From positions 868,001 to 932,000 of the forward strand of contig JBLDXI010000031.1 in assembly GCA_047495785.1 (NCBI GenBank): DNA of 64,000 nucleotides, in the 5' to 3' direction. This DNA comes from Lepidodermella squamata. Its lineage: Eukaryota > Animalia > Gastrotricha. Below the pieces are notes generated by a model, which worked only from the letters and a program-made list of their open reading frames with translations, searched no databases and was not told where the DNA came from. The translations under genes and the position numbers were made by a program. Shown piece after piece: positions 1,155 through 41,625 of this stretch (within the stretch, counting starts at the first letter, position 1; each line of letters begins with the position of its first letter).

Positions 1155-4100
1155 ATGAATCTGCGCATCATAGTCTATTTTTCAGCTGGCATAGTGGCAT
1201 CTTTTGCACGATTACCTGATCCAATTCTACTCCTGCCGCTCGACATGCAATCTGGATTCAAAGATTTGAGCGGGAAGTCTAAACAGCTAAGCGAACCAGC
1301 TCATCTGAGCATTAGCCAAGTGATGGCAGGTCCATTCGGTTATTTAGGAACTTCCGTTTCATTTTCAAGCAACGAACCGCTGATTTATAGCTTACCGTTG
1401 ATCGATAATTATCAGCCGTTGACCATTTCAATGTTTTTCTACTTCGACTCAACAGCTGGTGATGTCGACATTTTCACCTACGAGCGTCGAGATAATTATC
1501 TCTTTTTGTCTGTCAACGCTTCGGGAGGAAGGCTAATTTTGAGGAGTTTCGAGAACGGGAAAACAAGAAGCATTGCTGAGCTTCGCGAAGTCCGGCCTGC
1601 CAACTATTATTTCATCTCTCTCGCAATTGCATTCAACGGCGTGGTTCTGGTAACCATAGGTGTTGAGCCAAACTACTCTCTCGAAACTGCAATTCCTTTC
1701 GATGGTCATACTACCATTGGATCTGCAGAACCAAAACTGTACATCGGCGGTCTGAATGGAGCATCGAATCGCGAGCTTTTCTCTTGTGTTACAGCGTATC
1801 CTACGTGCATTTACGACCCATTAGTTACGAAACAAATTGTTGACTTATGCTTGCAGCAACACCGAGCCGCTTCTTCAACGCGCCAACGAGGTATGAATCT
1901 ATTGAGGAATGACAATGATAACTATTTAAGCCCTTCAAGTGAGCTTGTTTGCCCACCGATATACGGAGACCGAATGGCATGCTGATTTCGGCAAGCTTCA
2001 TAGCAGTGACCGAATAGATATCGTTGCTGACACCCGCACTACCGTTATTTTTGCTCAATGCGTATAAATATTCTGAAATTATCATTTTTAGGTCATGATA
2101 CTCATGCATCAAGCGGGCATTGCTACTGTGGCATATAGTTCCATCGTAACTGTTGAAGTTTCAAGCTATATCGGTATATGTAACGGCATGGATTGCGAAA
2201 AAGTCCTGATAGCCTTCATTGTTCCTATATTCTATGCTGTCAAATTATCGCAATCCGAAGAGGAATTCTGCCGCGAAATCGAGCAGAAACTACTTTCGGA
2301 AGAATTTCGTATTATATCAGTGATGTCGTTAGGTGAGGTTCGATTTCAAATGAGGAAGATGTCATTAATTTAACATTTTAAATAGATAAGCTGCCTTACA
2401 CCAGACCACTGAAGCTTTTGGCAGTTTGGCCATTCGACGACATAAGTGGAATCCGTGATCAGGGCCCTCTCAGACTTAGCGCAACTACTGACAATCGCTC
2501 GTTAAACTTCACTGATGGACCGTTCGAAGCTCCAAAAGCTGCGGTGCGATTAACCGAATCCCTGATGAAAATAGACCCTTTCAAAGTTTCGATCAATGAG
2601 GGTTACACTATCGCATTTTTCTTTTGGAAATCCTCTTCAGTGTATCCTAGAGACATCATGAACTTGCCCGACTGGTCGCTAAAAATTGGGATAACCAACG
2701 AGGGTATACTGTACGTTCAAAGCTATGAACAACTGTACAACCTTACTATGGCGGTTTCCGATGACGCTTGGTCTTTTCTCGGATTCGCGAGCAATTCATC
2801 GGGATTTTATGTCTACAACTCCTTCGGCTTGATATATTTTGCAACTGATACGAAATTCAAATCAACAACAATGTTTAGCATTGAGTTGACCGGGAATGGT
2901 TTGGACGGCATTTCTTGCTTATCAATTTATCATTTTCCGATGAGCTTTGACGATATTTCTCAAGTTCATGACGGCTGTAGGATGAAAATTATTCCACAGA
3001 TGAAATCTGGCCAGGCTTTGCCTGCAACATCTGAAATATCCAAGGGAAGTAGAGTCCCGTTCTTAACCCTCTAAGTCCGACTATGGGTTTTCGTCAATTG
3101 CAACTTCTCGGCGTAGGTGTGGATTGCTTATTAATTTTCGGCATAAAGTTTTTATACCACGGTTGAGCCCCTTACCTGAGCTTGCAGCACCCAGGCGGGC
3201 GCGTCCGCAACGTGCGATTACGCAACACAGTAATTAGGTAAATGTCCCTCGACTCTTAAACTCGTCGAAACACATGTGCCATTATGTGTGCACACATGAT
3301 GAGGGGCAATTTTTTGTCGCTCTGATTGCCATTCGAACACACGAACGTGTTTTGGAAACCAATTAACATGCGAAAACACATACGATCTTTTAATCACTGT
3401 TTTCAAGGCCCTAAATTGAGTTGCGCAGCTGTGCTTATAAAAATGTTGTCAGCAACATCTGGTGCTTACGCACTCTAGTGACAGCCATTTTTCACTTGAC
3501 AAAAAGTTATCAAGTGATTTTGGCGTACCAATTCCGATAAATTTGATTGCCGCCGATTCGATATCGATTTTCATCGGCTAAAAGCGCGTAGTTAGGGTGC
3601 GCGCCGGTAATGCTAGCCGGTTTGTCAAGGTGCCACTGATTTATCAACTAATCCTGGCCGAAAAATCGAGGTTTTGTCAACTTGCATCAAAATTTTCAGA
3701 GTTTTGTTACAAGTCGAAACACAAGTATGATGTAACAGGACTTTTCAAGGTGTTTGTTGCAAAACAATGGGTTCGCATGGCATTGCGAAACATGAGAAGA
3801 CAGCCATATAAAAGACCTGCAATAATCTATTTTATGGTTCCCCAAAATTGTTAACTTCGTTATCAAATGTCACTTGAAGACGACAGTAGCAGTGAAGAGG
3901 ACCTGGTGGAGATCGGCGAAACCTCGTCGGAATTGTCGTCTAACGATGAAGAGCTTGGCGTCACGCTCGACTCCGTCGTGCCGAAGACGAAATGGCGGAA
4001 AATGAACGAGGAGAGACCGTCTCACCAAGTTGAAAAATGCGCGTTGGTCAGCGGTCCATCGGAACTTTTCATCAAGAACCTCGTCGCAATGGAGCAAGGT

Positions 4101-7100
4101 AATTAATATTTATCAAATTTGTTGTACCGCTCACAATTTTTTTGTAGCCATGGAAAAAAACCGCAAAAAACTTGGCGGGAAATCGCGCTCTGATGGCAAT
4201 GCCGGCCCGGACGGGGGCGAAGAGAATGGTACCGAGGAGCAAGCTGTTGAAGAACCGAGCGAGGCAGGAAACGTCGTCGAAGAAGTCCAAGAAGCGCATG
4301 AGGAGGCCGAAGAAGAATTCCAAGATCTTGACGAAGAAGCCGATGATGAAGCGGAAGAAGACGAACAGCAATCATCAGTTTATTCTGACGGCGACTCAAG
4401 CGAATCAGAGAGCCGATACAAGTTGGTCAAGAGAAGAAGTCATCGGAAAGTGCTTCCTTTCTTCCTCCTCATGTTCCCGATCGTCAGCTTGCTGGTCGCT
4501 GAAACGAATAGGTACGCGGCACAGAACTACGATCCATCGAAGCCGCAATTCATCAACGTCACCGAGGAGGAGTTCTTCGGGTTTCTGGCGTGCGTCATTG
4601 GGATGGGTCTTGTCAACTTGCCGGCGCTTCATCAGTACTGGCAATCTTCGGATGCTTTGTTCTTTCAGCCGACGATTGCGAACATCATGAGTCGAGATCG
4701 GTTCAGAGAAATTCTGACTCACCTACACGCTGCCGACAACTCCAAAGCCTTGCCTCGAACAGACCCGAAATTCGACAAGATTTTCAAGGTCCGAGAAATG
4801 CTACAACAGCTGCAGGACAGCTGGCAAGCTAATTTCACGATAGGACCCGATGTAAATTGTTGTCTTTTTGTCTTTTTGCTCATCTTTATTGTCCTATTCT
4901 TGACAGATTGCTGTGGACGAGCAAATGATCGCCTTCAAAGGGCGCACCAGCCTCAAACAATTTATGCCAATGAAACCCGTCAAGCGAGGTCTAAAGATTT
5001 TCGCCCTGGCGCTATCACCTATCGGTTATATCTTTCGAGCACTGCTGTACAGCGGGAAAGGAGATGAAAGTACGTGATTTTTTTGTTTTGTTCTCTTGTC
5101 TACCCTCAATTTTCAAATAGCTGGCTCGGACGTTGCTGCTCAAGCAGGTCTCGCTGAGCGGATCGTTTTCAAGCTCTCAACTTCAATCTGGGGCTGCTGG
5201 CGCATTATCTTTATGGACAATTGGTTTTCTTCAGTTTCGCTCTACAACCGCCTTTTTGCTGAGAAAACTTACGCAGCCGGCACCGTTATCGCCAATCGAA
5301 CAGGTCTGGATCCGGCCGTTCCGATCAAACCCGCGTCAAAGCTACCGCGTGGAAGTTCGCAGTTCAAAGTTCAAGCTGACTTGCTTTATCAGTCGTGGCA
5401 AGACTCGAAAGTCGTCAACTTTCTCTCAACTCGACATTGCGGCACTGGTAACGACACGGTAAAGCGCAAGCAGAAAAACGGCAAGGTCGCTGAGTACTCT
5501 TGTCCCCCCGTTGTCGCTGACTATCAGAAGAACATGCGCGGCGTAGATGTCGCCGATCGCCTCCGCGAGTCGTACGATTGCACTTTGCCCGGGCGCAAGT
5601 GGCACCGCCTCGTGATTTTCTATGGCATCGAAACAGCAATCAACAACGCCCTGTTGGCTTTCAAGTCCACGGAAGATGATCCCGACTATCCTAGCTTGCT
5701 ATTCCGTCGTCGGCTATTCGACGAGTTGATACAAGCCTCTACCTCCGGCAATGTTACGCGCAAGGTCGGCAGAAAACGCAAGCTTTCTGAACAGCTCGAC
5801 CCGCTGGTCCCGAGCGACAAATGGCGAGAAGGCGGCCATTTTCCTGCTCACAATGGCTTCTATGAGTCGGTCGACGCTCGCGGTTACAAACGCGCAAAGC
5901 CGCGCGTGTGCGTCTACTGCAAGGTGGCGCCTGGCTGCACACCGCACATGGCGTCCTGGCACTGCGCTCAATGCGACGTTGGTCTTTGCTGTGAAAATTT
6001 CGGGAAATATGGTCCTCATGCCGGGATCTGACAAAATTACCGGTCCAAAATGACTGAACTTTTCATCCAAAACCTAAAAAATTTGCGTGCGATTCGCATA
6101 CATGTGTTTTCGAAAATTGCCAAATAAATAAAAAATTACGTGCTAAACCACATAGGTGTGTTCCCACAAATAAACATTTTTTACATCGTTTCGCTTGTGT
6201 TTCGACATGTAAAAACGACGTTTTTGGTCAAAATGAAAAAAATTGGTGAAAATATTTTAAGACTTGTGTTAACACAAGCACTTTTAAAAGTTACAATAGT
6301 AACACACATTTTTGTCATTTTTTTGCAACTTTCCAAAACACCAAGCGACTTACACATACACCAGCCGGACTTAGAGGGTTAAAACCGCTAATTTCTGCCA
6401 ACTCGAATTGTATGGCTGTAAAGTTGGACGGCCGACATTACATTTTGCCAGAATCATGCTTGAATTTATTCGAGCATCCACCAAGCAATGGAACCTTCGA
6501 AATCATAGGTGTGAAGGAGCAAGTGGCAATTCTTAGGCTAAATAACAGTGTTGAAATAGACCCTGAAACTTCGAATAACATTGCTCTGTTCACTAAATAC
6601 GTTGGAATGACGAATAACTGGTGGTATGACGTTATCGCTGTAGGATTCCGTGTTGAGCGCGAGCTTCAGAGGATTCAGGATGCGTATAACTACGAGTTCT
6701 TCGAGATTCATGGTAAAATTAACAGCGTCGATCCAGCGTGCGTATCGGAATCCTACATTTGCCTTGATTTGCCAAATAATGATGGTGAATCGCTTTTTAC
6801 TAGCCTGAACTTAGGTGCTGTTCTTTCTTTCACGGACATCCAATCCTATATAGATGGTGAAGCTAGATTGATAATGGTTAGCCTTATATAATGCGTAATG
6901 AAGCCTTATACCTTATATTGATTATATGCAGGGTGGAGTTTATTTGGGTGGAGAAAACGCCACAGCGAACTTCATTCGATTTTTCAACGTCGTGCAGCTA
7001 ACCAGTTGGATTCAAGAGACAGTAGCGTGTAGCGCCTTTCACGCAGCGAAATCAGAATGTCCCCAGTCGTTGGATCGGATACAATCTGAAACGTCATCGG

Positions 7101-8414
7101 TAATGGGTGAAACAACTCCCATGACATCGCAAAGCAGCGATCTGTTTCCAACAACAATATCAGCTAATGGAGGCTCATATTCTTCATCCGAAGGTTATAA
7201 GCGTTTTATTAACACAAATTCGCAAGATTTATGGAAGCTTCTCTGACTAGGTGTAATTACTGTGGCATTGGTCTCTGCAACGGCGGGCTCGTTACTTGTT
7301 CTAGCTGGAATCGCAGCGTGGTGTTTAATCAGGAGGCGGAGAGGATTGAAATTGAAGTTTGCAAAACACAAAGGAAATATCGGAGAAGAATCCACATACA
7401 TAACCCCATATGGCGATTTCAAGCAAATGCTCGAGATGACACCTGGAGGGCGTGATCTGGTTCCACTGATCGAGAATATTAATATCTATCCGAACTGGCT
7501 TGCGATTAATGAGTTGATTGGTCAAGGCTTCTTTGGAGCGATTCATAAGGGTGTTCTGAAGAAACCAGGCTGTGAACCTCGTGACATCGCTTTGAAAAGT
7601 GTCCTGCCCGGTGCTTGTAAGGATGTTGTCGCTTTCGTCAAGGAAGCTCTTATCATGAATGAATTCGATCACGAAAACGTCCTGCCATTGATAGGGATCG
7701 CGTCTCTTGACGGACAGCCTAATATTATTGTTCCTTTTATGGAGAGGGGCAACCTGCATCACTACCTCAACTCATTTGAGGACAATCTATGGGAAAAAGA
7801 TCTCCTGGTTGATTATTCTAAACAGATTTGCAGAGGAATGGTTTATCTTTCGTCACGCAATTGTCTTCACAGAGACTTGGCCTGTCGCAACATTTTGGTG
7901 TCAGACGATGAAGTTTTAAAGATTTCAGACTTTGGCCTGTCTCGATTGGTTTCTGACGAGCATCTCTATTATAGATCAGGCGATATCAGTACGACTATGA
8001 TACCAACTCGATGGCACCCGCCCGAGTCACTAAGCAGTCAAATTTTTCTACCGAAAGGAGATGTTTGGTCATTTGGGGTTGTTGTCTGGGAGATTTTCTC
8101 TCGTAAGATTTAGTTCGCCGACCTGACTACCTCTCACTATATCAATTTTAGTATGCCGGGAAGAGCCGTATGCGGGGTTGAACAATTTCGAGGTCATAGT
8201 TAACGTGACGAGCGGGTTACGTCTCAGCAAACCAACATTCTCTAGCGAAGAAATGTGAGCTTTGAAGTTTCAATCGTTCAATTAAATTTACTGTTTAAGT
8301 TTACTCCCCTACAGATACAAGAAAATCATCATACCTTGCTGGAATTGTCCCGAAACCGAGAGGCCGTCCTTCCAAGATCTTATGAAGGCTTTTGAAGAAC
8401 TGACCAATGATTGA
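1155..8414 (+). CDS. Receptor tyrosine kinase copy 1 (LamG-like/SEA-like/LamG-like/pseudo-trypsin/TM/MET-like kinase), 8 exons, interrupted by piggyBac in exon 4
   Basis: Signal peptide MNLRIIVYFSAGIVASFA; short GT-AG introns in consistent phase; TM VALVSATAGSLLVLAGIAAWCLI followed by RRRR; kinase motifs GQGFFG, ALK, HRDLACRN, DFG, DVWSFG; removing the piggyBac restores RVPFLKPLISANSNC, as in the paralogues. Confidence 0.85.
3067..6378 (+). mobile_element. Full-length piggyBac DNA transposon
   Basis: TTAA at 3063-3066 and 6379-6382; 13-bp perfect TIRs CCCTCTAAGTCCG / CGGACTTAGAGGG; internal transposase. Confidence 0.95.
3867..6031 (+). CDS. piggyBac transposase, 4 exons (3867-4098, 4148-4851, 4907-5069, 5121-6031), 669 aa
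   Basis: Spliced frame is open; acidic N-terminus, MSRDRF motif, catalytic D-D-D (IAVDEQM, MDNWF, GVDVAD), C-terminal Cys-rich domain (CVYC...CAQCDVGLC). Confidence 0.9.
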
Positions 8415-9356
8415 ACGGTTGCTTCTAGTTGTGTGGCTTGAGTTCTTGTCATTCCTAATAGATTAGTAGATTATTATTACACTAGGTAAGGTACGTGTGC
8501 CTAATTCGTTACACGTCCTAATTCGTTACAGTTTGCCGAAAAATCCCCCGCGCTTCGTGTCTGTGATAGATATTTATTTCATTTTTACACCACATCTTGG
8601 CATGGGTGTCCTCTACATTTTCGCAAAATTTCAGCCAATTCGGACCAATAGCCGTGACGTAATCGCGCCCGGTAGAAGGGGTGGTGTGAGTTTTCCGGAC
8701 AAAAATCAAGGACATTTGAAAGTTGCTAATTTATTACAAACGCTCCTGCTGTGATAAGGCAAAGTGTCGCCCCAAAAATGTTGACACTTATATGACTATG
8801 TTAATAAGTTGATAATGAATTGATAAGCTGAATTGATTCTTCAGATGATTTAAAAATCGATCCGTATGGTGCGAGATAAAATTAAAAATTAATTTGAATG
8901 GAAAAGAAACTTGCAAAGCGCAGGGATGAACTAAAAATGATAATTATAATTCAGTCGGCTCATCGTTGGGACGCAATTTTTTTCGTCAATATGTAACCGG
9001 TGTAAGTTCTGCGACTCTGATCCTATGGTGTGGACTTTGATCAACGTGCATATATTAAGTACGCACTTGGTAGCCGACACTGCTCCACACAGAAACACGT
9101 TCGTGCCAATAACGCCCTCGTTGAATATTGATCAGAGACCTTTGGACTTTCGAGGATATATAAACCTTCGTGCTTTGACGGATAGTTACCTGATATATCT
9201 GATCGTTACCTGATAGTAACCCTTTGTTATCTCGTCAGCTCAGTTGAATAATAAAGCTGTGAGTTGTGGAATCTGCCGTCTCTTACCAGATTAGAACCCC
9301 GTTACATTTGGTGTCAGAAGTGACTCTGGTTAAGAACGGCAGATCCTACAGTCAAG

Positions 9357-10379
9357 TTGGAACCCGTGGAACTAGTCGAACTAGTCGAACCGACAGCAGG
9401 CAAATCCTCTGGAGACCTTGCGAAAGTCCTTCGAAAGACTTCGAATTTTATCGGCGCTAAAATCGAGGCTAAAAAGAATACAGCAGCAGCAGTACCGGAA
9501 ATGGCGAAGACGGTGTTGGCAATGGACAAGGCAATGAAGCTGATTCCGAAAATCAGCGGGGAATCATGGCACACCTTCGACAACGAATGGCGACAGTTTG
9601 TGGACATCGTAAATGCCTGTGGCGGAGCCGATCCGCTACCCATACAATCTACTGGAAGAGACCCTAATACGGCCGACCCTCATAAATCGAAAGTCGAGAA
9701 AATGCAATACTTTGTCAACGTCTTGGGATCATTCTTGCGTGGAAAGGCTCTGCAAGTTTGGTATGAAGGCGAACGGGAGGGAGTAAATACACTGGCTGCT
9801 GCGAAAGCCGTGTTGGAAGAAGGACTGAATCTACGGCTAACTGCTGGTCGAGCCACCAATCAGTTCTTCTCACGAGTACAAACCGCAAGTGAAACAGTAC
9901 GCGACTACATTGGCGACTTGAAACGAATCATGCTTCACATGGGCAAGACAGAAGTCGAACGGGAGTATTGTCTGACGCAGCGTTTCTTGATGGGTATCAA
10001 ACCAGCTCTACGAGTTGCAGTCTTCCGACATGGCGAACCGAAGTCATTGCAAAACGCATATGAGCTGGCAGCACTCGAAGAAGCAGCGCTGAATTCGGCT
10101 ACGTTGAGTGAATCTGGAGCTGTCGTAGCCCATGTTGTGTCTGCACCTGGCGGCGTTAGGACCGAGGATTCTTGGAAAATAATGATACGGCTGGTAGGCG
10201 ACCGGCAAGAATTGGTGAGAACAGCCCTCCAATTGATGGAAGAGGAGGGTAACCTGCACAACAATTCAACGCATTATTCCGACAACAATGAATACAGTGA
10301 GGAAGGGATAAGACAGCCAGCGTTCGGAAAACCTACAGCGGATGAGGCCGACGACCGAATAATCCCGGTCAGATCTTGA
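9357..10379 (+). CDS. Retrotransposon Gag-like protein
   Basis: LRGKALQVWY...FFSRVQTASETVRDYIGDLK...RFLMGIKPALR...PKSLQNAYELAALEE resembles the Gypsy capsid/major homology region; follows the PBS. Confidence 0.8.
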   Translation: MEPVELVELVEPTAGKSSGDLAKVLRKTSNFIGAKIEAKKNTAAAVPEMAKTVLAMDKAMKLIPKISGESWHTFDNEWRQFVDIVNACGGADPLPIQSTGRDPNTADPHKSKVEKMQYFVNVLGSFLRGKALQVWYEGEREGVNTLAAAKAVLEEGLNLRLTAGRATNQFFSRVQTASETVRDYIGDLKRIMLHMGKTEVEREYCLTQRFLMGIKPALRVAVFRHGEPKSLQNAYELAALEEAALNSATLSESGAVVAHVVSAPGGVRTEDSWKIMIRLVGDRQELVRTALQLMEEEGNLHNNSTHYSDNNEYSEEGIRQPAFGKPTADEADDRIIPVRS

Positions 10380-10393
10380 AACGGTCTGACAAC

Positions 10394-10441
10394 GAAGAAG
10401 AAGAAGAAGAAGAAGAAGAAGAAGAAGAAGAAGAAGAAGAA
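10394..10441 (+). repeat. (GAA)16 microsatellite inside the LTR element
   Basis: Perfect trinucleotide run. Confidence 0.95.
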
Positions 10442-12679
10442 GGATGGAGGACCTACCGACTCGCTGAATGCGGTAGCGTTATGACCCTACCCGTAGTGTA
10501 TAGTGGTTGTATAGACAAGTTGTTCGGAGTACTGGCTACACCTGTCACCAGTACAAGTTGCGGGGTTTTTGTTATCTGTTTTGGATGGATGGCACGATGG
10601 CGTTGACCCTGCCCAGTGTTTTAATCGGGCACATTTTCCCTTGGGTCGCTGCAGAGGAGAAGAGGAGCTTCCAAGTACGGGCGGAAATACCGCCGATGAT
10701 GCTGAAAACGAGCCGAGGGTATGTTGGCCCAGCAGCAAAGTCGTGTTTGGGTGAGATATTTTGAAGTGCACTACGAAGTATTTTTTTGAATGGTTTCGAA
10801 TGTCGCTATGTTGAGCTAACGTCCGGACGAACCTATAAGTAAGCGCCGCACTTACGTCTGGTGTCAAAGTTCGGCCGAACCTCTATCACCTGACACCCTG
10901 ACGAACGGCGAGTGAGCGAAATGGCTGACGCGATGCGACTCAGCACTGATACAAGTCGAAGACGGAGATGCCCAGTTGATGATCTGGAAGGGAGCGGTAG
11001 TCCGCGAGGAGTTCGCACCGGATGGTACGGTGGGGAAATTCCATGAGGCGGCTCGCTCCATGTAGCGGAAGGTCCACCCTTGTTGGCTGCTGGAATGATT
11101 TGATGGAACACCCCTCGATGTCGCCGATTGAAGTGGCGAATGTTGGCGTTTCAAGCAGACACTGATTGAATCCCTGATGGATGATGGAAGCGGGAAGATA
11201 ACTACGACGTTGGCGTGAGTCCCATCAACGACAAATCGCCGACGCACCAGCCGAGAGGATGCAGGTGTTAAAATTGGCGAGCAAGTGCCGTTGACTTGGT
11301 AATGTATTGCCAAGGTGCTCGTTTGCTGCGACGACTAGAGTAGAGTATGGCATGACTGTCGCAGTGCCACAGCCGTCTCCTAAATCTAACCGTCCCAGGA
11401 GAAAGAATTAGTCGTGTTCGTCGAGCCGTCCGAGTCAATGGTAACGAATAGCAAAGATGGCCGTGGAATTTTGGATAGCTAAATATCTCATGAATTAGTA
11501 TTTAGTCCTTTGAACTGTATGGTGTTGTTTTGCATATCGTTGTTCCATGCTCTGGAAAAGGGGGATGAAATTATGAAATCGGAAAGTTGCTTTTCTGCTG
11601 TTGTTGATTATATAGTAGTGTTGTTAGTGTTCAGATATGACTCGCGTCGTCTTGTAATTGATTTCTGTGAATAGTGTGATATCTCTGCAAAACAACTAGT
11701 ATGATTTCACTGTAAATGATAAAGGCAAAGTTCACATAGCCTAGCCGATGTACGCAAGCCGCCTGCTGTTACAGACCTTGCGATGGCTGTGTTCCTGTGT
11801 TATCGTTGCAGCAACTTTTGTTACGGACAACGCGTATAAGTGGGCAACGCCTTCACAACTTTTGTGACTTTGTTTGTGACTGGAACTGGCGCTGATGTTG
11901 CTGCCACATGCGAAGTTGAAGTGCCTCGCCGCGTTATCACTAGGGCTACGAACGCACGACTTCGAAGTATCCGGCGATCGCAGATCTCCTTGTGGACACT
12001 CTTCTTCCGAGTCAAGGTCATGGCCGCGTCAAGAATCGTTACTAGTCGTTACTGTTGCAGCTGATGCATGGTGTGTTAGAATCAGTTGGAATTTCAATGG
12101 TGTAGCATGCCGAATCTATTCGTGTAATTGTCGAGCATTACTTGACTACCCTGGTGGCGAGTGGTCAGAGCGTACGCGAGTCTGGTCGCAATTCATTCCT
12201 TAGCAATTATCAGCTTGACCGGTATTCGTAGGTTAAACAGGGAGGAATTGTAACCGGTGTAAGTTCTGCGACTCTGATCCTATGGTGTGGACTTTGATCA
12301 ACGTGCATATATTAAGTACGCACTTGGTAGCCGACACTGCTCCACACAGAAACACGTTCGTGCCAATAACGCCCTCGTTGAATATTGATCAGAGACCTTT
12401 GGACTTTCGAGGATATATAAACCTTCGTGCTTTGACGGATAGTTACCTGATATATCTGATCGTTACCTGATAGTAACCCTTTGTTATCTCGTCAGCTCAG
12501 TTGAATAATAAAGCTGTGAGTTGTGGAATCTGCCGTCTCTTACCAGATTAGAACCCCGTTACAAATATTCAACATTAACCGATTTACAAAGAAGATTGTT
12601 CTCTGCGGTCCTGACCGCAGACATGACTGTGAGGAAATTCTGGACGGTCGGGACCGTCGAGATTCTAAGCGTGTACTTG

Positions 12680-13098
12680 CCTGTGACCAAACTGCTTCGT
12701 TATGGTAGGTTGCGCATATTGTAATTACTTCATCAATTTCCAGGTCTGCTAAAGCCTTGTCATAGGCTGAAACGCACGAGAATACATCCCGCGGCGCCAA
12801 GTTGGCTCCTGTCGTCATTATCGGTTGGAAATTAGTCGGAAAACTTGCCGAGAACGTCCCAAGCGTCTGAATAAGCTTATTGTAGTTTGGTTCGATTCCC
12901 ATGGCAACGCTGATATTACTGTCAGATTTAGACCGGATGACGGCAAAATAATATTTACCGCGTTCGATCATAACACCAAGTTGCCTGGTTGAATTTACAG
13001 TACCGAATTCAGTATGGGTGAAACTTAGCTGCCATTCTTCATCCACGTGCAGCACGAAATAAGTATCGCCCCTCTCGTGGCTGTAGATCTGCAGAACT
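12680..13098 (-). pseudogene. Orphan fragment of the first LamG-like exon of the receptor family
   Basis: YSHERGD...RGKYYF...GIEPNY...RDVFSCVSAYD aligns with exon 1 of the paralogues; truncated by repeats on both sides. Confidence 0.75.
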
Positions 13099-14019: not shown

Positions 14020-14149
14020 AACCCGTGTCATTTTTCGCATGAGACCCGTTACGTATGGCGATACGCCACAGCCGGGTCGAAAGCCGGGCGTCCCGGTTCA
14101 GATAGTCTCACCTTACATAACGGGTCTCGTGCGAAAAATGACACGGGTT
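14020..14149. repeat. Inverted repeat with about 36-bp arms (14020-14055 / 14114-14149), probable MITE remnant
   Basis: aacccgtgtcatttttcgcatgagacccgttacgta versus the reverse complement of the second arm, 2 mismatches. Confidence 0.7.
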
Positions 14150-15192: not shown

Positions 15193-15292
15193 TGCTCCAG
15201 GCGAGGCTCGAACTCGCGACCTTCGCATAACTCAGCGTACAATCAAGTACTGCTTATAAGTACGACGCACTAACCAACTATGCAACTGGAGC
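15193..15292 (-). tRNA. tRNA-Ile(TAT) with 26-nt intron, copy 1
   Basis: GCTCCAG/CTGGAGC acceptor stem, TCGTA-CTTATA anticodon arm, intron after position 37, GTTCGAGC T-loop, downstream T-run terminator. Confidence 0.95.
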
Positions 15293-20950: not shown

Positions 20951-21089
20951 CTATAGGACACGGTTTGGGAAACGCTGCATTAAATGCATGATTCACAAGG
21001 CTTTACACTTTACACCCATTGGGGACTGAAACCTGAAATCTGAATTATCTTCCGTAATCTTCCTATCCCGTATTACAAGTTTCTTTGAG

Positions 21090-24260: not shown

Positions 24261-24599
24261 CATTGTGTTTCAAGTAGTAAGTAGCCCTTCGACCCGCGCG
24301 CTGATTGGTCAATTTATTGTTGCTATGACTCCGGGATGAAACAATTTAGTCGTGCAATCCACTATTAAATTATTTTATATTTATGCAAAAAATGACCTTG
24401 CCACACCCTCTGCACGGTTTCCATTGACCACGAGCGTAAACTCCATATTAATCGTGGAAAAATACTGCGGCAAAAAACACTTGTTGCAAAAAATCTTATG
24501 GATCGCACGACCATAATGTTTCATCCGGGAGTCATAGAAACGATCAATCGACCAATCAGCGTGCGCCCAGAAATTCTACTATTTAGCTCAAGCACAATG
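24261..24599. mobile_element. Palindromic MITE inserted in the stalk exon of RTK copy 2
   Basis: CATTGTG...CACAATG ends, long imperfect inverted arms, TAA duplicated; removal restores STTQALITAAMGTTPSPS. Confidence 0.75.
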
Positions 24600-24669
24600 T
24601 AACAGCTGCAATGGGAACAACGCCATCGCCTTCAGAGAGTAATATCGCCATTTTCCCTTCACTTCTGTA

Positions 24670-24978
24670 GGTCCACAGACATTTGAGTCCTTGACAACTC
24701 AGCCACGACAACTCAGGCTTTTAAATATTTATTTTAATTACCGACATCTCAGGCTGCGACAACTCAGCCTTTTCCTAATTCTAATAATATCGCGACAACT
24801 CAGCCCACGACAGCTCAGCCTTTAAACTACTTAGTCCGGCTCACATGCTCGCTCCGCTCGCATGGTAATATGGCTAGGTATTTTTACAATTGAATAAAGG
24901 CTGAGTTGTCGTGGGCTGAAAAGTCATGCCTGAGTTGTCGTTTTGTCTGAATTGTCGAGACTCAGTTGACGGAATACG
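24670..24978. mobile_element. MITE with inverted arrays of gacaactcag repeats (intronic)
   Basis: 8-bp direct flanks CTTCTGTA; gacaactcag on the left, ctgagttgtc on the right. Confidence 0.7.
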
Positions 24979-25822
24979 CTTCTGTATTTTAGTTTTTTCT
25001 CTTTCCGATCAGACATCTTTGCTTTGGGAGCCATCTCTGCAGCTGGAGCCTTCGCTCTTGTTTTGATTGGTATTGGCGCTTGGCGTGTCTACACAAAAAG
25101 AAAGAAATCGAGATTCCCTAAGAAAAGGAAAATAATCGCCGGCGAAACGGAAATATTTCATTACATCACCCCCTATCGAGATTTCAAGGAAATGCTGGAG
25201 ATGGCACCCGAAGGTCGTGATATTGTTCCACAGATCGAAAATATTAACATTTATCCGAACTGGCTTGAGACAAACGAGTTAATTGGCCAAGGTTTCTTTG
25301 GCGCCATTCATAGGGGCATTTTGAGAAAACCAGGCTGCGAACCTCTTGCTATTGCTCGTTTGAGTATGATTCATGGAAAAAAGATCTCCTGGTGGATTAT
25401 TCCAAACAGATTTGCAGAGGAATGGTTTATCTGTCGTCACGCAATTGTCTTCACAGAGATTTGGCCTGTCGCAACATTTTGGTGTCGGACGATGAAGTTT
25501 TGAAGATTTCAGATTTCGGGCTGTCTCGGTTGGTTTCTGACGAGCACCTCTACTATAGATCAGGCGATATCAGCACCGCTATGATACCAACTCGATGGCA
25601 CCCGCCCGAGTCACTAAGTAGGCAGATTTTTCTACCTAAAGGAGATGTTTGGTCATTTGGCGTTGTTGTTTGGGAAATTTTCGGTTGTAAGTGTAACTTG
25701 ATTGAATTTTCCTGGCACGACTAAAGCCGGTGTTTTCAGTATGTCGTGAAACACCTTATGCTGGGCTCAACAATTTCGAGGTTATTGTCAACGTAAACAA
25801 TGGTTTACGTCCGAGCAAGCCA

Positions 25823-27053
25823 CTGTACCATGACATAAGGGCGCCGGACATAAGGGCGAGAGGCAAAAGAGCGCCGGACAAAAGGGCGAAAGACCGAAGA
25901 GCGCAGACAAAAGGGCGCCGAGACAAAAGGGCGCCTGGACAAAAGGGCGCCTGATTTTTATGTATAACGAAGGCCTATTAGTTATTATTTTTTAAAACGA
26001 TGGCTTTGCGACGCTTTTAGAGGAAGCTAATTGTTTTACAATGCGGAGTGTTGGCAAATATAACCCCTTCGCGAACCAGGTTCATCCCCAGGTCGATTTA
26101 CCGGCTGGGATGGGCTCCCAGGCGCTCGTCCCATTACAGGATAACCTGTTTGACTTTGAAAACCTATTCCCTAATTTAGACGCCATTTGGCATGTGCTAG
26201 ATAATTAATTTTCGATTCGAATGACTTTGTGCTAAATTATTTAATTTATTCAGTCATTGATTAAAATGGTTTGCTTCTCTTGCATGATAATAAATCTCGA
26301 TCAAGTAGATTTTAGGGTTTTATCATAACTCATTTTGCTTATTTTGCTTTCGGAAACCTTATAAAATCTTATGAAACTCACAATCGCATCAATTTCCGAT
26401 TGCAGCATTACTGTAGACCTGGGATGCACCAAGCAACGACATTCAACTATTGACTATCTATTCACCTTTTGATATCGTTGTCTTGGAGCATCGTATATAA
26501 GGCATTTAATATCATGAATAAAACCATTCGTTGAGTTGCGTATGATTGGTGGTCTCTTTGACTTCAAGACATAGACCAGGGTTAACATTACTATTAAGTT
26601 TTACAACTGTGTTACTAGGTATTTTCAATTTTCATGAACAAATCTATAATGAGTATAACAAAAAATGACAAATAAGTGAACTGAATTCATCAGAAAGTTC
26701 AACCTGCCCCAGTCAATCCTACCTGACATTGTCATCTCAGTAATCAAGGACTCATGCAAAATAATTAATAACCACCTGTACAACAAATAATTGTTAAATG
26801 TAAATACCCGTGTCTTTAGGCAATCTGATACTTAGTATTGGACGGAACATTGATTTTTAAATAAACTACTACTAAAAGTAATTGGGAATTTTATCTGGCG
26901 CCCTTATGTCCTGCGCCCTTTTGTCCAGGCGCCCTTTTGTCTCGGCGCCCTTATGCCCTCGCGCCCTTTTGTCCGGCGCCCTTTCGTCTTTCGCTCTAAA
27001 GTCGGCGCCCTTATGTCTGCGCGCTTATGTCTGCGCCCTTATGTCCTACCACG
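25823..27053. mobile_element. Foldback/MULE-like element with inverted arrays of about 15-16-bp repeats
   Basis: gacaaaagggcgcc repeats at 25832-25952 mirrored by ggcgcccttttgtc repeats at 26895-27050; no matching TSD. Confidence 0.7.
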
Positions 27054-27372
27054 AAAATCAGCAATTCATTTCACTAACTATAAAAATGCCCGTCAATCTT
27101 CTATCTCCTTGATTTGCAGATTTTTCCTCAGGTCAATTGCTGATCAACTAAAAGAATCATCTGAATTGCCCTGATATTTCATTTTTAAGCTTATTCCCGG
27201 CCAGAAAATCTCTTGAAATTTATCAGCATTATTAGCATGATCAAATAAGGATATAAATCGTGTTTTTTCAAAGGAACTTCAGTTTTTCCCAATTTTGTTC
27301 CCGGCTGTGTTGCGTAATCATAAAGAATCACGCCCATGTTTTAAGATTTAATTTAATTTCGATACATGGATA

Positions 27373-30477: not shown

Positions 30478-30577
30478 TGCTCCAGGCGAGGCTCGAACTC
30501 GCGACCTTCGCATAACTCAGCGTACAATCAAGTACTGCTTATAAGTACGACGCACTAACCAACTATGCAACTGGAGC
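30478..30577 (-). tRNA. tRNA-Ile(TAT) with intron, copy 2
   Basis: Identical 100 nt to copy 1. Confidence 0.95.
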
Positions 30578-31158: not shown

Positions 31159-34100
31159 TTAATTTTCTAATAACAGACAATATTTTAATCTGATCAATGC
31201 ACATTTATCTTGAAGATAGATTGCCCCGATGTAGAGAGCCATGAGAAATTTAGCCGACCACAGCGTTTCGCCACCAGATATTGACATTCCAGTCGTCGCC
31301 TGGATTGTTTCCATTGTGATCGTGGAATTCGCCGTGCTCATCTCCTCGCTAACGTGGTTGAGGGTGCTCAAACTAGTCGATGTCTTGCTTCTTAGGCTTA
31401 TTAAGTAGTCTTTCATGCTGGTCATGGGTAAGGATATCATATCCTGCGTAGTAATTTTGGTAGTACTTGGCTTTGGCGAGGATGAAGGAATGGTGATGTT
31501 CCACTTGCTTGCTGCTGGATGTCATTTCCTGAGTAGAGCTTGGCTTAAGCGAAGACGATCGCAGAGTTGTCTTGACTGTCTTGCTGGTCGTGGGGGTGGA
31601 CAGAATCTGTCGCGTTGTTTGTGGTTTCAGGGAGGAAGACGTTTTCGCCGCAGCTATGCTTCTAGTCAAGTTTAAATAGTCTTGAAGCATCTCGTTTTCC
31701 ATCCAATGTGTCAATTTGAGGATACTGACAAAGCGAGCGATGTTGGTTGCACTGCAGTTATCATTTCCCAGCTTCAGGTGAATCCCAGCCTGTGAAAGTA
31801 ATTTTAGAATAAATGTTACAACTTATCCTATAATGAGGATTGAAATAGCAGAAACTAACCAACCACAAACTTCGTTTTAGCATTCTGACAGGTTCGACAT
31901 GTCTGATTAGTAGAATCATCGCGCCATCCATTAAATTGCATGGCGAATGGTTATCAAAAGAGGCGCAAATTTCCTCACCGGACTCACAACCAGGGTCAGA
32001 CGTTACCACTTTGCCGTATGAATACTCGAGCCAGCCATCAGAGGGTGACGCAAAGCCGTAAACAATCGCATCCCACGACCGTTCACCCTCGGCGAATTCA
32101 CTCAAAAAGCCGATGTTGTTGTACTCCCATGGCGAAATGCTGAGCCTTCTCTTCAACCTTGCGACAGTTAGACCTTTTTTCGAAGCAATGGCAGTAAAGC
32201 CCGGGTCACTGCAAGTCGCAGGTAGAACCACGTAGCGTTCATCGAAAATGGCTGATGCACAAGAATTGAAAGTCAGAATAAATGGAAATTGATCGGCGGT
32301 TGCTCGGCCCATGTACGGATAAGTTATTGGTATGGCGTTTAGATTTCTATAAGGCCTTGCCTGTCCCTTCAACTGCTTTGGCGACATCTTAACGCGGCAA
32401 CCATCGTAAACCAGCTTGATCTCCTCAAAACTTAGCGGCTCGCGGTAAACTGATAAGCAAGACATCTCATCCCAAGCACCGCCCATAGTTTTCATGCTGA
32501 ACGAATCTATCGTTGTGAAATTAGTTGTTTTTACCATTTCAACGATGCCGTACGTCGAGTAGACAATGACTGCAGATGTGTTCTGCACTATACTGAGATA
32601 CGTCCACTCTTCTTCGACCACAGGTAGATTTATACGGACGTCACCGCATTTTAACTCAACTTGAGTTGAAATTGTCAATTCTAGTTTCCACGATTCGATT
32701 TGCAGCGTGGTGTGTGCCCATGTGGCCATGAGTCGGTAAAAGAAAGCGATGGTGAATCCTGATTCGATTTTGAAATTCAACTTGGTCGAACTCACGCCGA
32801 TCAGTACGCTTGGAACACCGGTTGCGTAATTCCCAAATGGCCCTTGAACGTGTATCTTCGGTAAAAAACCTGAACTGTCTTCAAAATGGAAGGGACCCAT
32901 ATTCATTAATCCTTCCGGGTCGCTTAGGGGCCACATTGCTAAGAGAGATAGCGGCCGAGCATAGGGCATTTCTGAAATTCGATAGGTAATAGATTTCAGC
33001 AAGCGTCTTTGTTCAAGAGCTACCTAGATAACCAATCGAGAGAATGCGAAGGTTCTCAGATGATAGCTTTGCCTGCAGATCTTGACAGATTTCCGCTTCA
33101 CTCTTCAAAGAGCCAATTTTGAAGGGATAATACACTGGAACGTTGAAAGTGGCTCGAACGAGTTGGCATTCAGTACCATCGCAAAAACTGTCCATCGGAG
33201 CCAAGTCGATTATACCATCGGGAGCTAGATTCTGTATACCAGATGAGAGGAACACAGCGCCCACCTGTGAATGAATCGCGAGTTTATTGAATTTTTCCGA
33301 AATCGGCTATATAACATACTTCTTTCAATGCTTTATTGATGATAGAAGTCCTCTTCCTGCTAGGAATTATTGCGTATGAATCGTTCCACGTATCCGACAT
33401 AAGGTATGATCCAACCAGGAGCGCTTTACATAAAAAAGGCACAGCATATAACAATATTCATGTCCCTTTCCCAAAGTGTATATTTGTCTAGAGAACCAAT
33501 CTTTTGATTAAACGTGTCGAACATAAAAACGCTCGAAAATGAAATTTTCCCAATGGTTTATTAAATTTTGCTGCCTAATTTTTTTTTAAATTTTACTAGC
33601 TTTGTTAGCAAATTGAAATGTGTTTTGCTAAATATATATGAATATGTTGATATAAAGCGATATTCTTGATCTATATCACCGTTAAAAAGGTAAAAGTGGG
33701 GTTGGAAAAAGTGATATTTTTATGCCACTTCCAAGGTCAATGAACAAGTAACAAGTAGCCGAGAAAGAGGTGTTGGTTGTCATCAGGGTTGCGGATAAAG
33801 GCAACCTAACTGCCTTACGATTCAAAAACCTAATTTCGCTATGGCATGGACAAAATATTGTAACTTGTAACAGATAGGAAATTAAAGGTATTTCTATACT
33901 TATTGAATTTATTCGAGCTGAATTTGCAAAAAGTACGGCACGCGACCACTTCATATGCCACCTAAGGCCCTATCCACCCATTATAATTTTAATGAAATGA
34001 AAAAGCCGCAGGTACCTCTTTCAAAAAATTTGATTTTCTTCTCATGAATACTAGAAGCAGCCCTCTATCTAATGATACCAGTTACACTTTGTGGTCCATT

Positions 34101-35217
34101 ATGGATAATTTTCTAAAATTCACCAAAAAGTCATATATTTAGTGTTTTTGGGCGAAATTGCCAACGGTTGGCTGTTTTAGTAATTTTTTGAAAAAATTCG
34201 AAAAAATTAGTTTATCCTCGTTGAGAAATTTTCTAGCGCCCGTATTACCAACACAAATCCCCTCTATCCGACGATATAAACTTTGTAGGGTAAATAATTT
34301 ATTTCGATTTTCAGATTTTTTCCGTCTGTGCACAATGGACTTTTAATTCTGAAAAATCTGAAAATCGAAATATAATATTTCCTACAAAGTTTACATCGTC
34401 GGATAGAGGGGATTTGTGTTGGTAATACGGGCGCTAGAAATCAACAGAATTATTAACACCCACCTGGTTGGAAACTAGCTGAAGCCGTATGTCTGCCGAG
34501 GCAATCTTCAATAATCTCGGGAATTCTCTCTCCATCCAAGACTTCGTCGAAAGCGGCTACGCAAGACAAAGCGTCTCGCGGTGTCGTATTGTTGCCAACC
34601 AATACAGTAAGTGGACCAGTCAGCCTCGAGTTGAATTCAATTGTTGTTGCATTGTAGCTGTTAACGACATAATCCGGCTCTTTCGCAATGGAAACTCGGA
34701 GAAATTGGCCTTTGGAGATGGACAGAGCCACGAAAGCAAACTTCCCAGTTTTCACTTGCTCAGAGGAGCGGAACAACGGAACAAATTTTCGTTGCTTGGC
34801 GTATAGCAAAATATTTTGATGGTATGCACCCACTTGAAAGAATAGAGAACTGCTAATGGACTGAATGCCGAAAACGTCCACAGATATATATTTAGCAATG
34901 GTGTTGAGTTTGAAGAAAAAACTTATCGTGACATCAATTTCTGCGTTACCATCCCTCATAGGCAGATCATAGGAACTGATGAGGGCCACATCGCTGAACT
35001 TGCGGCTGGACGACGAGCTCAAGTAGCCGAATGGTCCAGCGATCATTGGGGAAATGACTGCGTTGCACGTGACTCTAGGTTCTGATTTCTTGCTCAAATC
35101 GTAATTGAATGCGAGTTTGTCAAACGTAACGTTGAGAATTGATGGAGGAAGCGTTGCATTCAAATGTTGGCTCCATAACAGTAGAATACTTATTAACAAC
35201 ACCGGCATGGGGCACAT
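31159..35217 (-). CDS. Kinase-less paralogue of the receptor family (ectodomain, long Ser/Thr stalk, hydrophobic tail); apparent frameshift near 31500
   Basis: Same exon structure and motifs as the RTKs (IAGPFGYL, EPDY, SCVAAFD, WPL, GFTIAFF, DQFPF...C...LPATC, CNLMDGA, FVSILKLTHWM); ends in T/S-rich sequence and LWSAKFLMALYIGAIYL, with no kinase before the tRNA. Confidence 0.75.
34230..34440. repeat. Long hairpin (about 90-bp arms) in intron 1 of the kinase-less paralogue
   Basis: tttctagcgcccgtattaccaacacaaatcccctctatccgacg... and its reverse complement. Confidence 0.85.
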
Positions 35218-37529: not shown

Positions 37530-40500
37530 ATGTTTCGCCATATGGCTTCTTCAAATGCTCTACTCTTGCTTCAGGTTTGCTCATGTTATTCTGAGCTGAT
37601 CGATCCTCTGTTATTCCTGCCATTCGACCGTCAATCACAGACGAGCGACATAAGCCGCAGATCCAGGAAGCTGAGCAACGAACCTCTAGTCCTATCGAAA
37701 ACAATCGCTGGCCCTTTCGGATACCTTCAAACATCGGCTAGCGTTGCATTCACATCAGTTGCGATCGGCCTATACGAACTGCCAACCACGCAACAACCAG
37801 ATTACAGTATTTGCTTGTTTTTCCTTTTCGACTCATTAGAGTCAAAAGATCTTAAGGAATTTGGCGTATTCAGCTACGAAAGATTGGACTGGAATCTAAG
37901 CGTGTCCCTCAATCTAACGAACCAAAAGCTTTCTCTTGCAACATCGGACAGCTGGCCAAACGCTTTGTGGGAAAGCCGTTCCTTGAGCAGAGGGAAGTAC
38001 TACTTTCTTGGATTGTCTGCAATCAAAGGTTATGGCTTAAGCGTATCAATCAGTGAGGAGCCCGATTACACAGTGCTGGAGACTAACGGCCCTTTCCGAG
38101 TTCAAGATGCAGCGACTCAATTGAAGCCGAAGCTTCACATTGGCCGATCACCGTCCGGCTTGACGACTCAAGAGGTGTTTTCTTGCGTTTTAGCATATGA
38201 TGCTGGTCTTTCGAATGAGCAGTTTTTGGAGGTTATCGAACTATGCTCGAATAACCATGAAAACGCCTCCTTGAAACAACCAGGTATTTTATTTCAAAAT
38301 TTTCACAGAGATTTCGTATTAAATTTTACTTTCAGCAAATATATTTGGGACTTATTACATGCAAGACGAATGGCGTCCGTCACATGAAGTCAAGCCTAGT
38401 GGGAGCCGCTGGATATTGGACGATAAAGCGAGCAATGAGGTTCTGTTACCGTTGTTTGAAGTTTAAGGTCTGAGATTCAGTCCTTTCTTTCAATAGCTTT
38501 CGGCTCTATTCAAATCTGCTGGAATCCAACCCATGCTATTTTACATTGGAAGCATAAATATTTGGCCGTATAGCAGCAGTTGCGGTGCTCAAACTTGCAA
38601 CCGCGCAGCAGTCACATATCTTGCCCCGGTATATCTGCCCGTGAAATACGCTCAGAACATAACGGAAAGAATGCTTTGCCGCCAATTTGAAAAACAAATC
38701 GGCTCCAATAGTCTTAAAATTCTGTCTATCGGCTTGGGTAATGAATGCCTATCGTATCAAGTTTTCATTACGTTCCTTATCCCATTAAAGACATCCCGTT
38801 CAGGAAACCTTTCTCGCTGATCGCGCATTGGCCATTGAACAAAGCAAATGGACTGATTGATAGAGGACCACGTCGGCTTCGGGATGAGAAGCCCGCAGTT
38901 GCAGAGTATGTGAATGGACCTTTTGCTTCGAAAGAAACAGCGGTGAAGATAACTACATTTCTGCTGATCGTCGGAGAAGACTTATCACATCCCATCGATT
39001 CCGGTTATACTATCTCGTTTTTCCTCCGGAAATCACCCGAGAAGCAATATCGAACAATGCTGGAGCTGGCATCGTGGGATTTTAAGATTTGGGTTGATGA
39101 AAAGGCAGAAATCAACGTTCGCATTCAAGACAAAAAACATCAGCTAAAGTCACTCGCAATTGACAACGAATGGATTTTTCTAGCTTTTGTGAGTAACGTC
39201 CATGGCTTCTATGTGTACAACCTATTCGGCACTGTTTATCACAAGAAGGGAGCAAGCTTTTCACCTTTCGGTAGATTCGAAATGAAACTAAACGGGAATG
39301 GGCTTGATGCAATGGCTTGTCTATCAATCTATCGTGAACCTCTGGGGCCTGATGACTTGCTCCAGGTTTATGACGGTTGTCGGCAAGATATATCGAATCA
39401 ATTGTCTGGCCAAGCCAATATCGCGATCGGATTACCACCTACACCGTATCCCACGTTGTATGGAACTATGCCTGCAGATTCCGATCAGTTCCCATTCTTC
39501 AAAAAGATCGATTTCGGATATAAATCGTGCATTACAGCAATGTTAGACGAGCGGCACTACATATTGCCTCAAAGTTGTCTGAGCCTCCTATGTGGGGCTA
39601 TTTCATGGTCATTCAATATCCTCGGATCACAAAATGGGTTATCGATTGTCAGAATGGTTCATCCAAACGACATTGGCGAAGATGGACGTAATAACATCGG
39701 GCTATTCACGAAGCTAGCTGGTTTGGATCTCATATGGCATCATTACGTCTACGTTTTAGGCCACGAAAAGCCGAGAGAAAGTCAGCAAGTCGAATTTTCC
39801 GCGGATTTGGATTCCAATAACAAGATTGATTGCATCGATGAAAAAAGCTACCAATATTCTTCTGGTTTGATAACGGTGGATGAACCCGGCTGCGATAACG
39901 ATCTGTACCTTTGTTTCGTTCCAACTGTGGGCGAAAAATTCTCGGCCTGCAACCTGAGTGAAGGAGCCACGCTCTCGTTTGCTGCAACTGCCGACCTCGT
40001 AACACCAGTTTGGCCTCGTCTGCTCCTCGTAAGTTGGCTTTGAGCCCCCGGAAAATCTCATCAAATGCACCGAACATTATCTCACAGGCTGGCATGTATT
40101 TAAGAGAAGGCAATTGTGAATCAGCGAAATATGTGAAATTCGTCAATCTCATTCGATTGAACTATTGGATACAGCAAACGATCGCCTGCAGCTCGCTATC
40201 TGTAAGCGGCATGTCATGTCCAGGTGATTTGAGCGACACAACCGGAAATACTACACTTGACTTAGAGGAGGAGGAAGTGGAGGAAGAAAACTCTACGCTG
40301 GTCTTCACTCCGGTGAAAATAGAAATATCGACAAATAATCCAGAAATTCTAGCCTCCTCAACAGCTACGGCGATTATGGTTGTAGCGCCTGAGTCTGAGA
40401 TTCCGGGAGGTGATTTCCAAAATATTTTAGAGAATCTCAAAGGCTGAATTAATTCTTCTTCATTCAGGTAGGATCGCCCTCATAGTGGTCTCTACAACCG

Positions 40501-41625
40501 GAGCTATCGCTTTCGTCCTCGTCGGAGTGGCATTTTACTGCTTGTGTAGATTGCGAAGAAAGGCGAGAGCTTCGATGCAAAAAATGATAGACAAGAACCC
40601 CAGGAAATCTATGTACATCACTGCATTTTTCGATTTCCAGCAAATGCTCGAAATGACACCGGAAGGTCGAGATCTTGTTCCTCTCATCAAGGAACTTCAT
40701 ATTCAAAGCTGCTTGATAGAATGTGCCGATTTAGTAGGGCAGGGCTATTTCGGAGCTGTTCACAGAGGGGTCTTACGCAAGCCTGAATGCGACGCTGAGC
40801 TGGTCGCTCTTAAAACAATTCTTCCAGGGACCTGTAAAGACGTGGTTTCGTTTGTTCGGGAAGCCTTGCTGATGAAAGAGTTTGACCATGTAAACATCTT
40901 GCCTTTGATCGGAATTGCTTCGCTGGATGGCCAACCTAACATTGTGGTCCCATTCATGGAAAAAGGCAGCTTGAACCGCCATCTCAACTCTTTTGAGCCA
41001 GAATTATGGGAATATGAACAGCTCATCGACTTCGCTAAGCAAATTTGCCAGGGGATGGTTTACCTCTCATCACGTAACTGCCTCCACAGAGATCTGGCTT
41101 GCCGCAACATTTTGGTGTCTGACAATGAAGTTTTGAAAATCTCAGACTTCGGCTTGTCTCGCGTTGTCTCACCTGACCAGCTTTACTATCGATCAAGTGA
41201 TGTGGGTGCCTCTATGATACCGACCAGATGGTACCCGCCCGAGTCATTGTGCAGTCAAGTATTTTTGGCAAAAAGCGATGTTTGGTCTTACGGAGTTGTT
41301 GTTTGGGAAATCTTCTCGCGTGAGTTGTGAATTTCATTCGTTGTTGTTGTTGTTATCACTCTTTATTCCTCAGTTTGCAGGGAAGAGCCGTACGCGGGCT
41401 TGAACAACTTTGAAGTTATTGTACAAGTGTCAAATGGATTGAGGCTGAAGAAACCCGACATTTGTCCACATAAAATGTTTGATCGTGAACCATCATTTTC
41501 CTACATAGAAATTGTTAACATTTCTGTCTTCCAGTTACGAATCTGTCATCCTACCTTGTTGGCGTTGCCCAGAAACCGAACGCGCTTCATTCGCAGAGCT
41601 GGCTGAAATTCTTGGGAATAACTAG
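37530..41625 (+). CDS. Receptor tyrosine kinase copy 3, apparently intact, 8 exons
   Basis: All splice junctions in phase; signal peptide, two LamG-like domains, SEA-like module, pseudo-trypsin, TM (IVVSTTGAIAFVLVGVAFYCLC), kinase GQGYFG/ALK/HRDLACRN/DFG/DVWSYG, terminal CWRCPETER exon. Confidence 0.9.

Follow-up and report, generated by a model that had tools for sequence, protein, structure and literature searches.

An apparently undescribed receptor tyrosine kinase architecture with LamG-like and dead trypsin-like domains in Lepidodermella squamata

To which receptor class, if any described one, does a protein belong that combines lectin-like folds and a dead protease outside the cell with a tyrosine kinase inside it? 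The question is raised by a gene cluster in a 64,000-nt stretch of the Lepidodermella squamata genome (contig JBLDXI010000031.1, positions 868,001–932,000, forward strand; hereafter the window), in which one of six related receptor loci, gene F, is intact. Our data suggest, with a probability of roughly 60 %, a lineage-private family of single-pass receptor tyrosine kinases (RTKs) in which non-enzymatic binding heads sit on a working kinase, signalling would be driven by ligand-induced dimerisation, and a kinase-less copy, locus E, would act as a decoy or co-receptor. The architecture is real and apparently undescribed, as neither an RTK with a trypsin-fold ectodomain nor the layout LamG-spacer-LamG-dead trypsin-transmembrane helix-kinase was found in the databases and open papers searched (most subscription journals lying outside this coverage), which upholds, within that scope, the original prediction that the combination matches no described RTK class.

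The model of gene F reads as a protein of 1,234 amino acids without an internal stop, its introns being GT-AG and 52–59 nt long. A hydrophobic start, a signal peptide by eye, is followed by an ectodomain of about 885 residues, a single transmembrane helix at about residues 889–911 and the cytoplasmic tyrosine kinase, i.e. the complete RTK layout lies in one frame. Spliced forms are present in the public run X1 at five of the seven introns: introns 1 and 6 are precisely missing from contigs that are mostly 99 % identical, and loose ends pair with the neighbouring exon at introns 2, 5 and 7. The join at intron 5 matters most, as it links the end of the protease domain in exon 5 to the membrane and kinase exon 6. 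X1 is of low depth and its kind was guessed as RNA, no listed run being recorded as such. A second run, X2, covers this region with a single difference; the assembly may derive from it. Homology searches and fold models were made exon by exon, the exons being joined only to check the reading frame, the hydropathy and where motifs lie.

Searched directly against Pfam and PDB, the ectodomain sequence returned nothing significant. Residues 1–203 of exon 4, the second LamG domain, model as a jelly-roll of the ConA/LamG/pentraxin kind (best Z 18.7, pLDDT, the predicted local distance difference test, mostly 78–95), with Atlas features at 0.97, and relatives of this domain pass Pfam Laminin_G_3. The domain of exon 1 is homologous to it (hhalign 97.6 %, E 3e-12, a matter of profile homology only). 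These sandwiches may bind glycan or protein. The best fold rows were clostridial neurotoxin binding domains; a toxin relationship was rejected, the resemblance being confined to the generic jelly-roll at 10–18 % identity, the next domain being trypsin-like rather than a beta-trefoil, and no toxin domains occurring in the gene. Between the two LamG domains lies a spacer (exons 2 and 3), whose length and strand-helix pattern are, by eye, compatible with the SEA identity proposed originally. Exons 2 and 3, searched singly, gave no SEA match in Pfam or PDB, and the poor single-exon model of exon 3 (pLDDT 54, helix-strand-strand-helix) matched no fold.

Residues ~202–412 of exon 4 adopt a trypsin fold (Z 11–11.8 to enteropeptidase, MASP-2, C1s, haptoglobin, thrombin and hepsin; haptoglobin at 11.3) in a model of middling confidence (pLDDT 41–76). 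Because relatives guide this model, homology was tested separately with a profile built from the relatives' protease domains only, and all four exon-4 pieces and three of the four exon-5 pieces beat 200 shuffles. The receptor exons have no direct match to Pfam Trypsin; an Atlas part-search with the protease stretch returned LamG, probably as carry-over from the whole exon, and was not used. The catalytic triad His57-Asp102-Ser195 is replaced in all copies: His by Ser or Thr, Asp by Gly or Gln, and Ser by Glu, Asp or Leu (Ala in the pseudogene D). Asp194 is lost as well, a Pro-rich linker stands in place of the absent Arg-Ile/Val activation site, and the spacing from Cys58 to the Asp102 strand is 15–23 residues versus 39–52 in relatives, i.e. 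a common deletion in the first barrel that leaves the domain short by about 20–30 residues. The shrunken fold may serve as a scaffold or a second binding face. The ectodomain had originally been read as two LamG/ConA-like domains and a trypsin fold, with no Sema, PSI or IPT domain; this reading stands, both folds being modelled in exon 4 and no Pfam match to Sema, PSI or IPT being found.

Considering that the pseudoprotease adjoins the membrane, and that SEA modules, if the spacer is indeed one, are often tied to shedding, foreign proteases or inhibitors might cleave or bind the dead trypsin fold or the spacer and thereby switch the kinase. We regard such a protease bait as improbable: a domain without 20–30 residues of its first barrel and without Asp194 would be a poor protease mimic, and the spacer alignments contain neither a conserved basic cleavage site nor a GSVVV-type motif.

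As to the origin of the ectodomain, a profile of the exon-4 copies gave 24 hits among 1.84 billion representatives, the best being LamG + Trypsin proteins (E down to 2e-27) located on ENA metagenome contigs from animals. Those examined in context terminate just past the protease domain, and a kinase domain was present in none of the 19 scanned. Four relatives and the receptors share a phase-0 intron at the same position near the protease C-terminus, and the three relatives with long enough contigs stop in the next short exon after this common intron. The terminal Trp-Ile..Ala-Cys..Cys-Pro tail of the secreted family is retained in exon 5 of genes F and A, before the stalk. The receptor ectodomain descends from this rare family of secreted LamG(-LamG or CUB)-pseudoproteases (P0001-P0004, P0006, P0011, P0012 and P0014), with which it shares the LamG subtype, the Pro-rich linker, the dead trypsin domain, the intron position and the C-terminal tail. 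The secreted proteins, 20–25 % identical to the receptors, differ in ending after the protease domain, in lacking spacer, transmembrane helix and kinase, and in having a full-length, Pfam-positive trypsin domain that keeps Asp194. The simplest history would be that a gene for a secreted LamG(-LamG)-pseudoprotease grew beyond its former C-terminus to include a stalk, a membrane helix and a tyrosine kinase; this direction is favoured because the protease domain is more complete in the secreted forms.

A kinase-bearing relative was found in none of the homology, 1.84-billion-representative profile and JGI metagenome searches. The JGI scans, by kinase patterns and by secreted-family patterns, returned no relative, and a word-indexed homology search with exon 4, which covers only proteins of similar length, returned nothing. 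Among the metagenome relatives, CUB, Sushi and Cys-loop channel proteins carry this LamG subtype as well, which is therefore a mobile head module. One single open reading frame (ORF), P0007 (L006, 2835–6134), combines a Cys-loop channel ligand-binding domain and hydrophobic segments with three LamG domains of this subtype, and seems to encode an unusual channel subunit with a lectin-fold head. On contig L002, a CUB-like/transmembrane/tyrosine kinase gene and a flytrap (ANF_receptor) receptor gene (2303–4090 and 8081–10543) lie among secreted LamG-pseudoprotease genes, and neighbourhoods of this type could provide the components for fusions. The idea of a LamG-trypsin-CUB-transmembrane-kinase fusion on that contig was rejected: the protease gene has its stop in the next exon, and the adjoining kinase does not group with those of the window.

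The kinase itself appears to be in working order, with the Gly loop, Lys, helix-C Glu, HRD and DFG motifs complete in F and A, and a match of F to Pfam PK_Tyr_Ser-Thr at E 2.6e-59. Its best hits are invertebrate MET-like and Eph kinases, both at ~40–43 % identity. Trees were built from exon 6 only, excluding fragments of less than 150 residues from the first and, in addition, the longest and redundant rows from the second. With long rows included, the window kinases form a long private branch that is unplaced; without the longest rows they are sister to the MET/AXL group (support 91/77), and in the approximately unbiased test neither an Eph sister (p 0.34) nor a ROR sister (p 0.086) was rejected. 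Of the resemblance to MET/RON noted originally, the motifs hold up, but the kinase phylogeny gives no supported placement with MET. In A, F and the upstream copy, the last kinase helix is followed by only a few residues, without a C-terminal docking tail, and A, D and F all carry an unchanged juxtamembrane Tyr-Ile-Thr motif. Having neither Sema domain nor docking tail, the receptor is, judged from its predicted domains, not MET.

The MET-like kinase motifs, the place of MET among the best hits and the likewise dead trypsin fold of HGF might instead be taken as signs of a MET receptor with a built-in ligand, i.e. the dead protease would be a tethered HGF beta-chain that activates after cleavage. 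HGF beta requires cleavage and binds the Sema domain of MET, and the MET/RON ectodomain is defined as Sema-PSI-IPT (PMC8679783). Here, Sema domain, Arg-Ile/Val activation site and Asp194 are all absent, the domain comes from the LamG-pseudoprotease family and not from kringle proteins, and the kinase does not fall inside MET. With both cleavage site and Sema domain missing, we rejected this mechanism, which we consider extremely unlikely.

The cluster had originally been seen to hold at least six related loci within 42 kb and was read as a case of tandem birth and death. Translated search (tblastn) of the window and gene models placed all six at the positions proposed (Table 1), with the refinement that only F is intact, the others being disrupted, partial or kinase-less: A is interrupted by a young piggyBac element, E lacks the kinase, C and D are a fragment and a pseudogene, respectively, and one copy is cut by the window. 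Birth and death is real, because only one of the six genes is intact. The last exon of the window-cut copy is 76 % (amino acid) and 82 % (nucleotide) identical to that of A. Gene A has the exon plan of F, its sole lesion being the piggyBac insertion in exon 4. This 3.3 kb element looks young because of its inverted ends, its TTAA duplication and its open transposase gene, which spans 3867–6031 (+) with 669 stop-free codons and, in the model, three short spliceosomal introns. Fragment C comprises 139 codons. The first three exons of D were not found at the locus; the remainder has a stop at 23718–23720 and a 179-bp deletion in the kinase N-lobe at ~25356, similarity in its exon 5 fades beyond ~25 codons, and its exon 7 is interrupted by an inverted-repeat element starting at 25832. 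Read straight, E encodes a secreted protein of 875 amino acids that ends at 31373. Its Ser/Thr-rich stalk resumes in a different frame from ~31520 and continues to a weakly hydrophobic end at 31159, therefore there is a frameshift or an unrecognised intron near 31520.

The copies have not diverged evenly along their length, with identities of 28–51 % between ectodomain domains and 79–98 % between kinase C-lobes. Synonymous sites are saturated between the ectodomains, and the ratio of non-synonymous to synonymous rates (dN/dS) is not computable there. The C-lobes of A and D are 98 % identical in amino acids and 93 % in nucleotides. Among codons for residues identical in A and D, 73 of 93 are unchanged in the C-lobe versus 70 of 146 in the ectodomain (p = 2e-6). 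The control pair F–A gave no such contrast (p 0.37), therefore synonymous sites in the C-lobe region are free to change. The kinase segment of D was thus traded with A, or with a close sister, well after the heads had separated, and this late exchange points to gene conversion or recombination. This evidence comes from the single pair A–D, of which D is a pseudogene.

Taking the architecture, the splicing of F, the descent of the ectodomain, the loss of catalysis, the kinase motifs, the mosaic segments and gene death as established, we infer the steps of a mechanism that go beyond this anatomy. The ectodomain would provide a non-enzymatic binding surface, contact with a ligand would dimerise the receptor, and the dimerised kinases would cross-phosphorylate their activation-loop tyrosines. 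As the protein ends without a C-terminal tail, the docking site for adaptors would be the conserved juxtamembrane tyrosine. With divergent heads on an exchanged, conserved kinase, a variety of inputs would feed into a single output; E and other kinase-less copies would be decoys or co-receptors. The ligand class is most likely external, i.e. microbial or environmental surfaces, which is a guess. The immune, lectin-like or allorecognition role suggested originally is likewise conjectural. It is tempting to go further and see an undescribed RTK class that forms a modular innate sensor array, in which gene conversion recombines fast-changing lectin-fold and pseudoprotease heads onto a common kinase, while secreted or kinase-less paralogs serve as soluble partners or decoys, much as if animals had their own version of the lectin receptor-like kinase clusters of plants; in this full form the proposal is a tentative and rather unlikely one.

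The ligand might also be a self molecule, such as a secreted LamG-pseudoprotease paralog or another receptor copy, in which case these genes would encode endogenous signalling or adhesion receptors that act in development, in the patterning of cuticle or epithelium, or in the wiring of neurons, rather than as sensors of foreign surfaces. Neurexin, agrin and laminin use their LamG domains to bind self proteins, and the occurrence of the same LamG module on CUB, Sushi and Cys-loop channel proteins would fit such a role. However, rapid gene death and mosaic kinase segments suit co-evolving pairs less than sensor families, and we consider a self ligand doubtful.

Several points weigh against the private RTK family favoured here. 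RNA support is thin, coming from one low-depth run of guessed kind, and introns 3 and 4 are absent among its listed joints. Intact copies amount to one in six, and the decoy role of E hinges on an unverified frameshift. The trypsin model is of middling confidence, and the alignment behind it contained true trypsin-family relatives. Divergent ectodomains are also the rule in RTK families and, synonymous sites being saturated, diversifying selection is not demonstrated.

Compared with known systems, the family resembles MET/RON and AXL-type receptors in being single-pass RTKs with similar helix-C and pre-kinase motifs and paired activation-loop tyrosines. In contrast to MET/RON, it has no Sema, PSI or IPT domain and no C-terminal docking tail, and its kinase is about as close to Eph as to MET. 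Serine protease homologues (SPHs) such as haptoglobin, the HGF beta-chain and arthropod clip-SPHs likewise have a trypsin fold without the triad, which they use for binding; those proteins are secreted, whereas the domain of this family belongs to a kinase receptor, is internally deleted and has no usual cleavage site. The ALK/LTK ectodomain also contains two jelly-roll beta-sandwich domains, of the MAM kind, separated by a spacer. Here, however, no MAM, LDLa, Gly-rich or EGF match was found in Pfam, a protease fold follows, and ALK is not among the kinase hits listed. In the Venus kinase receptors and other invertebrate-only RTK classes, too, a borrowed sensor module is joined to a tyrosine kinase. 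The Venus kinase receptors are old, conserved across several phyla and carry a flytrap domain (PMC3703292), whereas the family described here differs in its ectodomain, shows fast turnover and was found in one genome only.

Table 1. Positions of the receptor loci and associated elements in the window
Feature	Position	Strand	Basis
Gene F, intact receptor tyrosine kinase gene, 8 exons	37530–41625	+	Gene model
Gene F exon 1: signal-peptide-like start, first LamG/ConA-like domain	37530–38283	+	hhalign to second LamG; weak Pfam Laminin_G_3 in paralogs A and E
Gene F exons 2–3: spacer of ~115 amino acids, three conserved Cys	38336–38439, 38497–38737	+	Alignments, exon-wise tests
Gene F exon 4: second LamG/ConA-like domain, Pro-rich linker, bulk of dead, internally deleted trypsin-like domain	38791–40028	+	Profile, fold model
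Gene F exon 5: end of trypsin-like domain with C-terminal tail of secreted family, then acidic and Ser/Thr-rich stalk	40088–40409	+	Profile, splicing
Gene F exons 6–8: transmembrane helix, juxtamembrane region with conserved Tyr, intact tyrosine kinase, no C-terminal tail	40468–41319, 41374–41476, 41535–41625	+	Pfam PK_Tyr_Ser-Thr, motifs, splicing
Upstream paralog, last exon (kinase C-terminus and stop), truncated by window start	6–99	+	Similarity to A
Gene A, full receptor layout	1155–8414	+	tblastn, gene model
Gene A exons before and around the element	1155–1890, 1931–2043, 2092–2332, 2386–3066 + 6383–6876 (single exon split by element)	+	Gene model
Gene A downstream exons	6932–7193, 7251–8102, 8152–8254, 8315–8414	+	Gene model
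piggyBac-type transposon in A exon 4, between second LamG and trypsin-like domain	3067–6382	+	13-bp terminal inverted repeats, TTAA duplication
Young long terminal repeat (LTR) retroelement beside fragment C	8992–12563	+	315-bp identical LTRs, 4-bp AATA duplication, gag-like ORF
Locus C, orphan fragment: 3' part of first LamG exon (exon 1) only	12681–13097	-	tblastn, model
Locus D, pseudogene	22846–25822	+	Similarity, lesions
Locus E, kinase-less copy, whole ectodomain	31159–35217	-	tblastn, gene model
Locus E exons	35217–34464, 33423–33320, 33264–33024, 32971–31860, 31789 onward	-	Gene model

Besides the elements of Table 1, inverted-repeat elements lie in or adjoin receptor copies at 14020–14149, 24295–24565, 25832–27045 and 34230–34440. 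Three identical intron-containing tRNA genes, Ile(TAT) by eye, are scattered through the cluster (15193–15292, 30478–30577 and 42644–42743, all -), detected by Rfam and not by ARAGORN; two of them are within ~1 kb downstream of E and F, and they could act as recombination seeds. At the end of F starts a divergent Cys-loop ion-channel-like gene (41612–42620, +) with a weak Pfam Neur_chan_LBD match (E 0.038), an FPFD motif and hydrophobic C-terminal segments. Also in the window, on the minus strand, are protein-kinase exons that lead into a long series of almost identical ankyrin repeats (15999–19389), a tandem pair of cathepsin L-like genes whose prodomain and mature enzyme are separated by a Thr/Lys-rich insert (49691–52793), two ORFs that resemble, by eye only, a tyrosine-recombinase (Crypton-like) element (56139–57624), and long haemagglutinin-like ORFs with a terminal lipase-3/Mbeg1-like domain (58474–63948).

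RTK layouts peculiar to single lineages are common among invertebrates, and this family is so far confined to one genome with its function only inferred, which limits the significance of the finding. What the window contributes is the splice evidence, the trypsin-fold match, the common first-barrel deletion and the codon test for kinase exchange. The family offers a stepwise view of how a new RTK class may be born: a secreted pseudoenzyme would gain an anchor and a kinase, its protease fold would shrink, and the copies would swap kinase segments while their heads diverge. If these heads bind microbial surfaces, the family would be an animal parallel of the receptor-like kinase immune arrays of plants.

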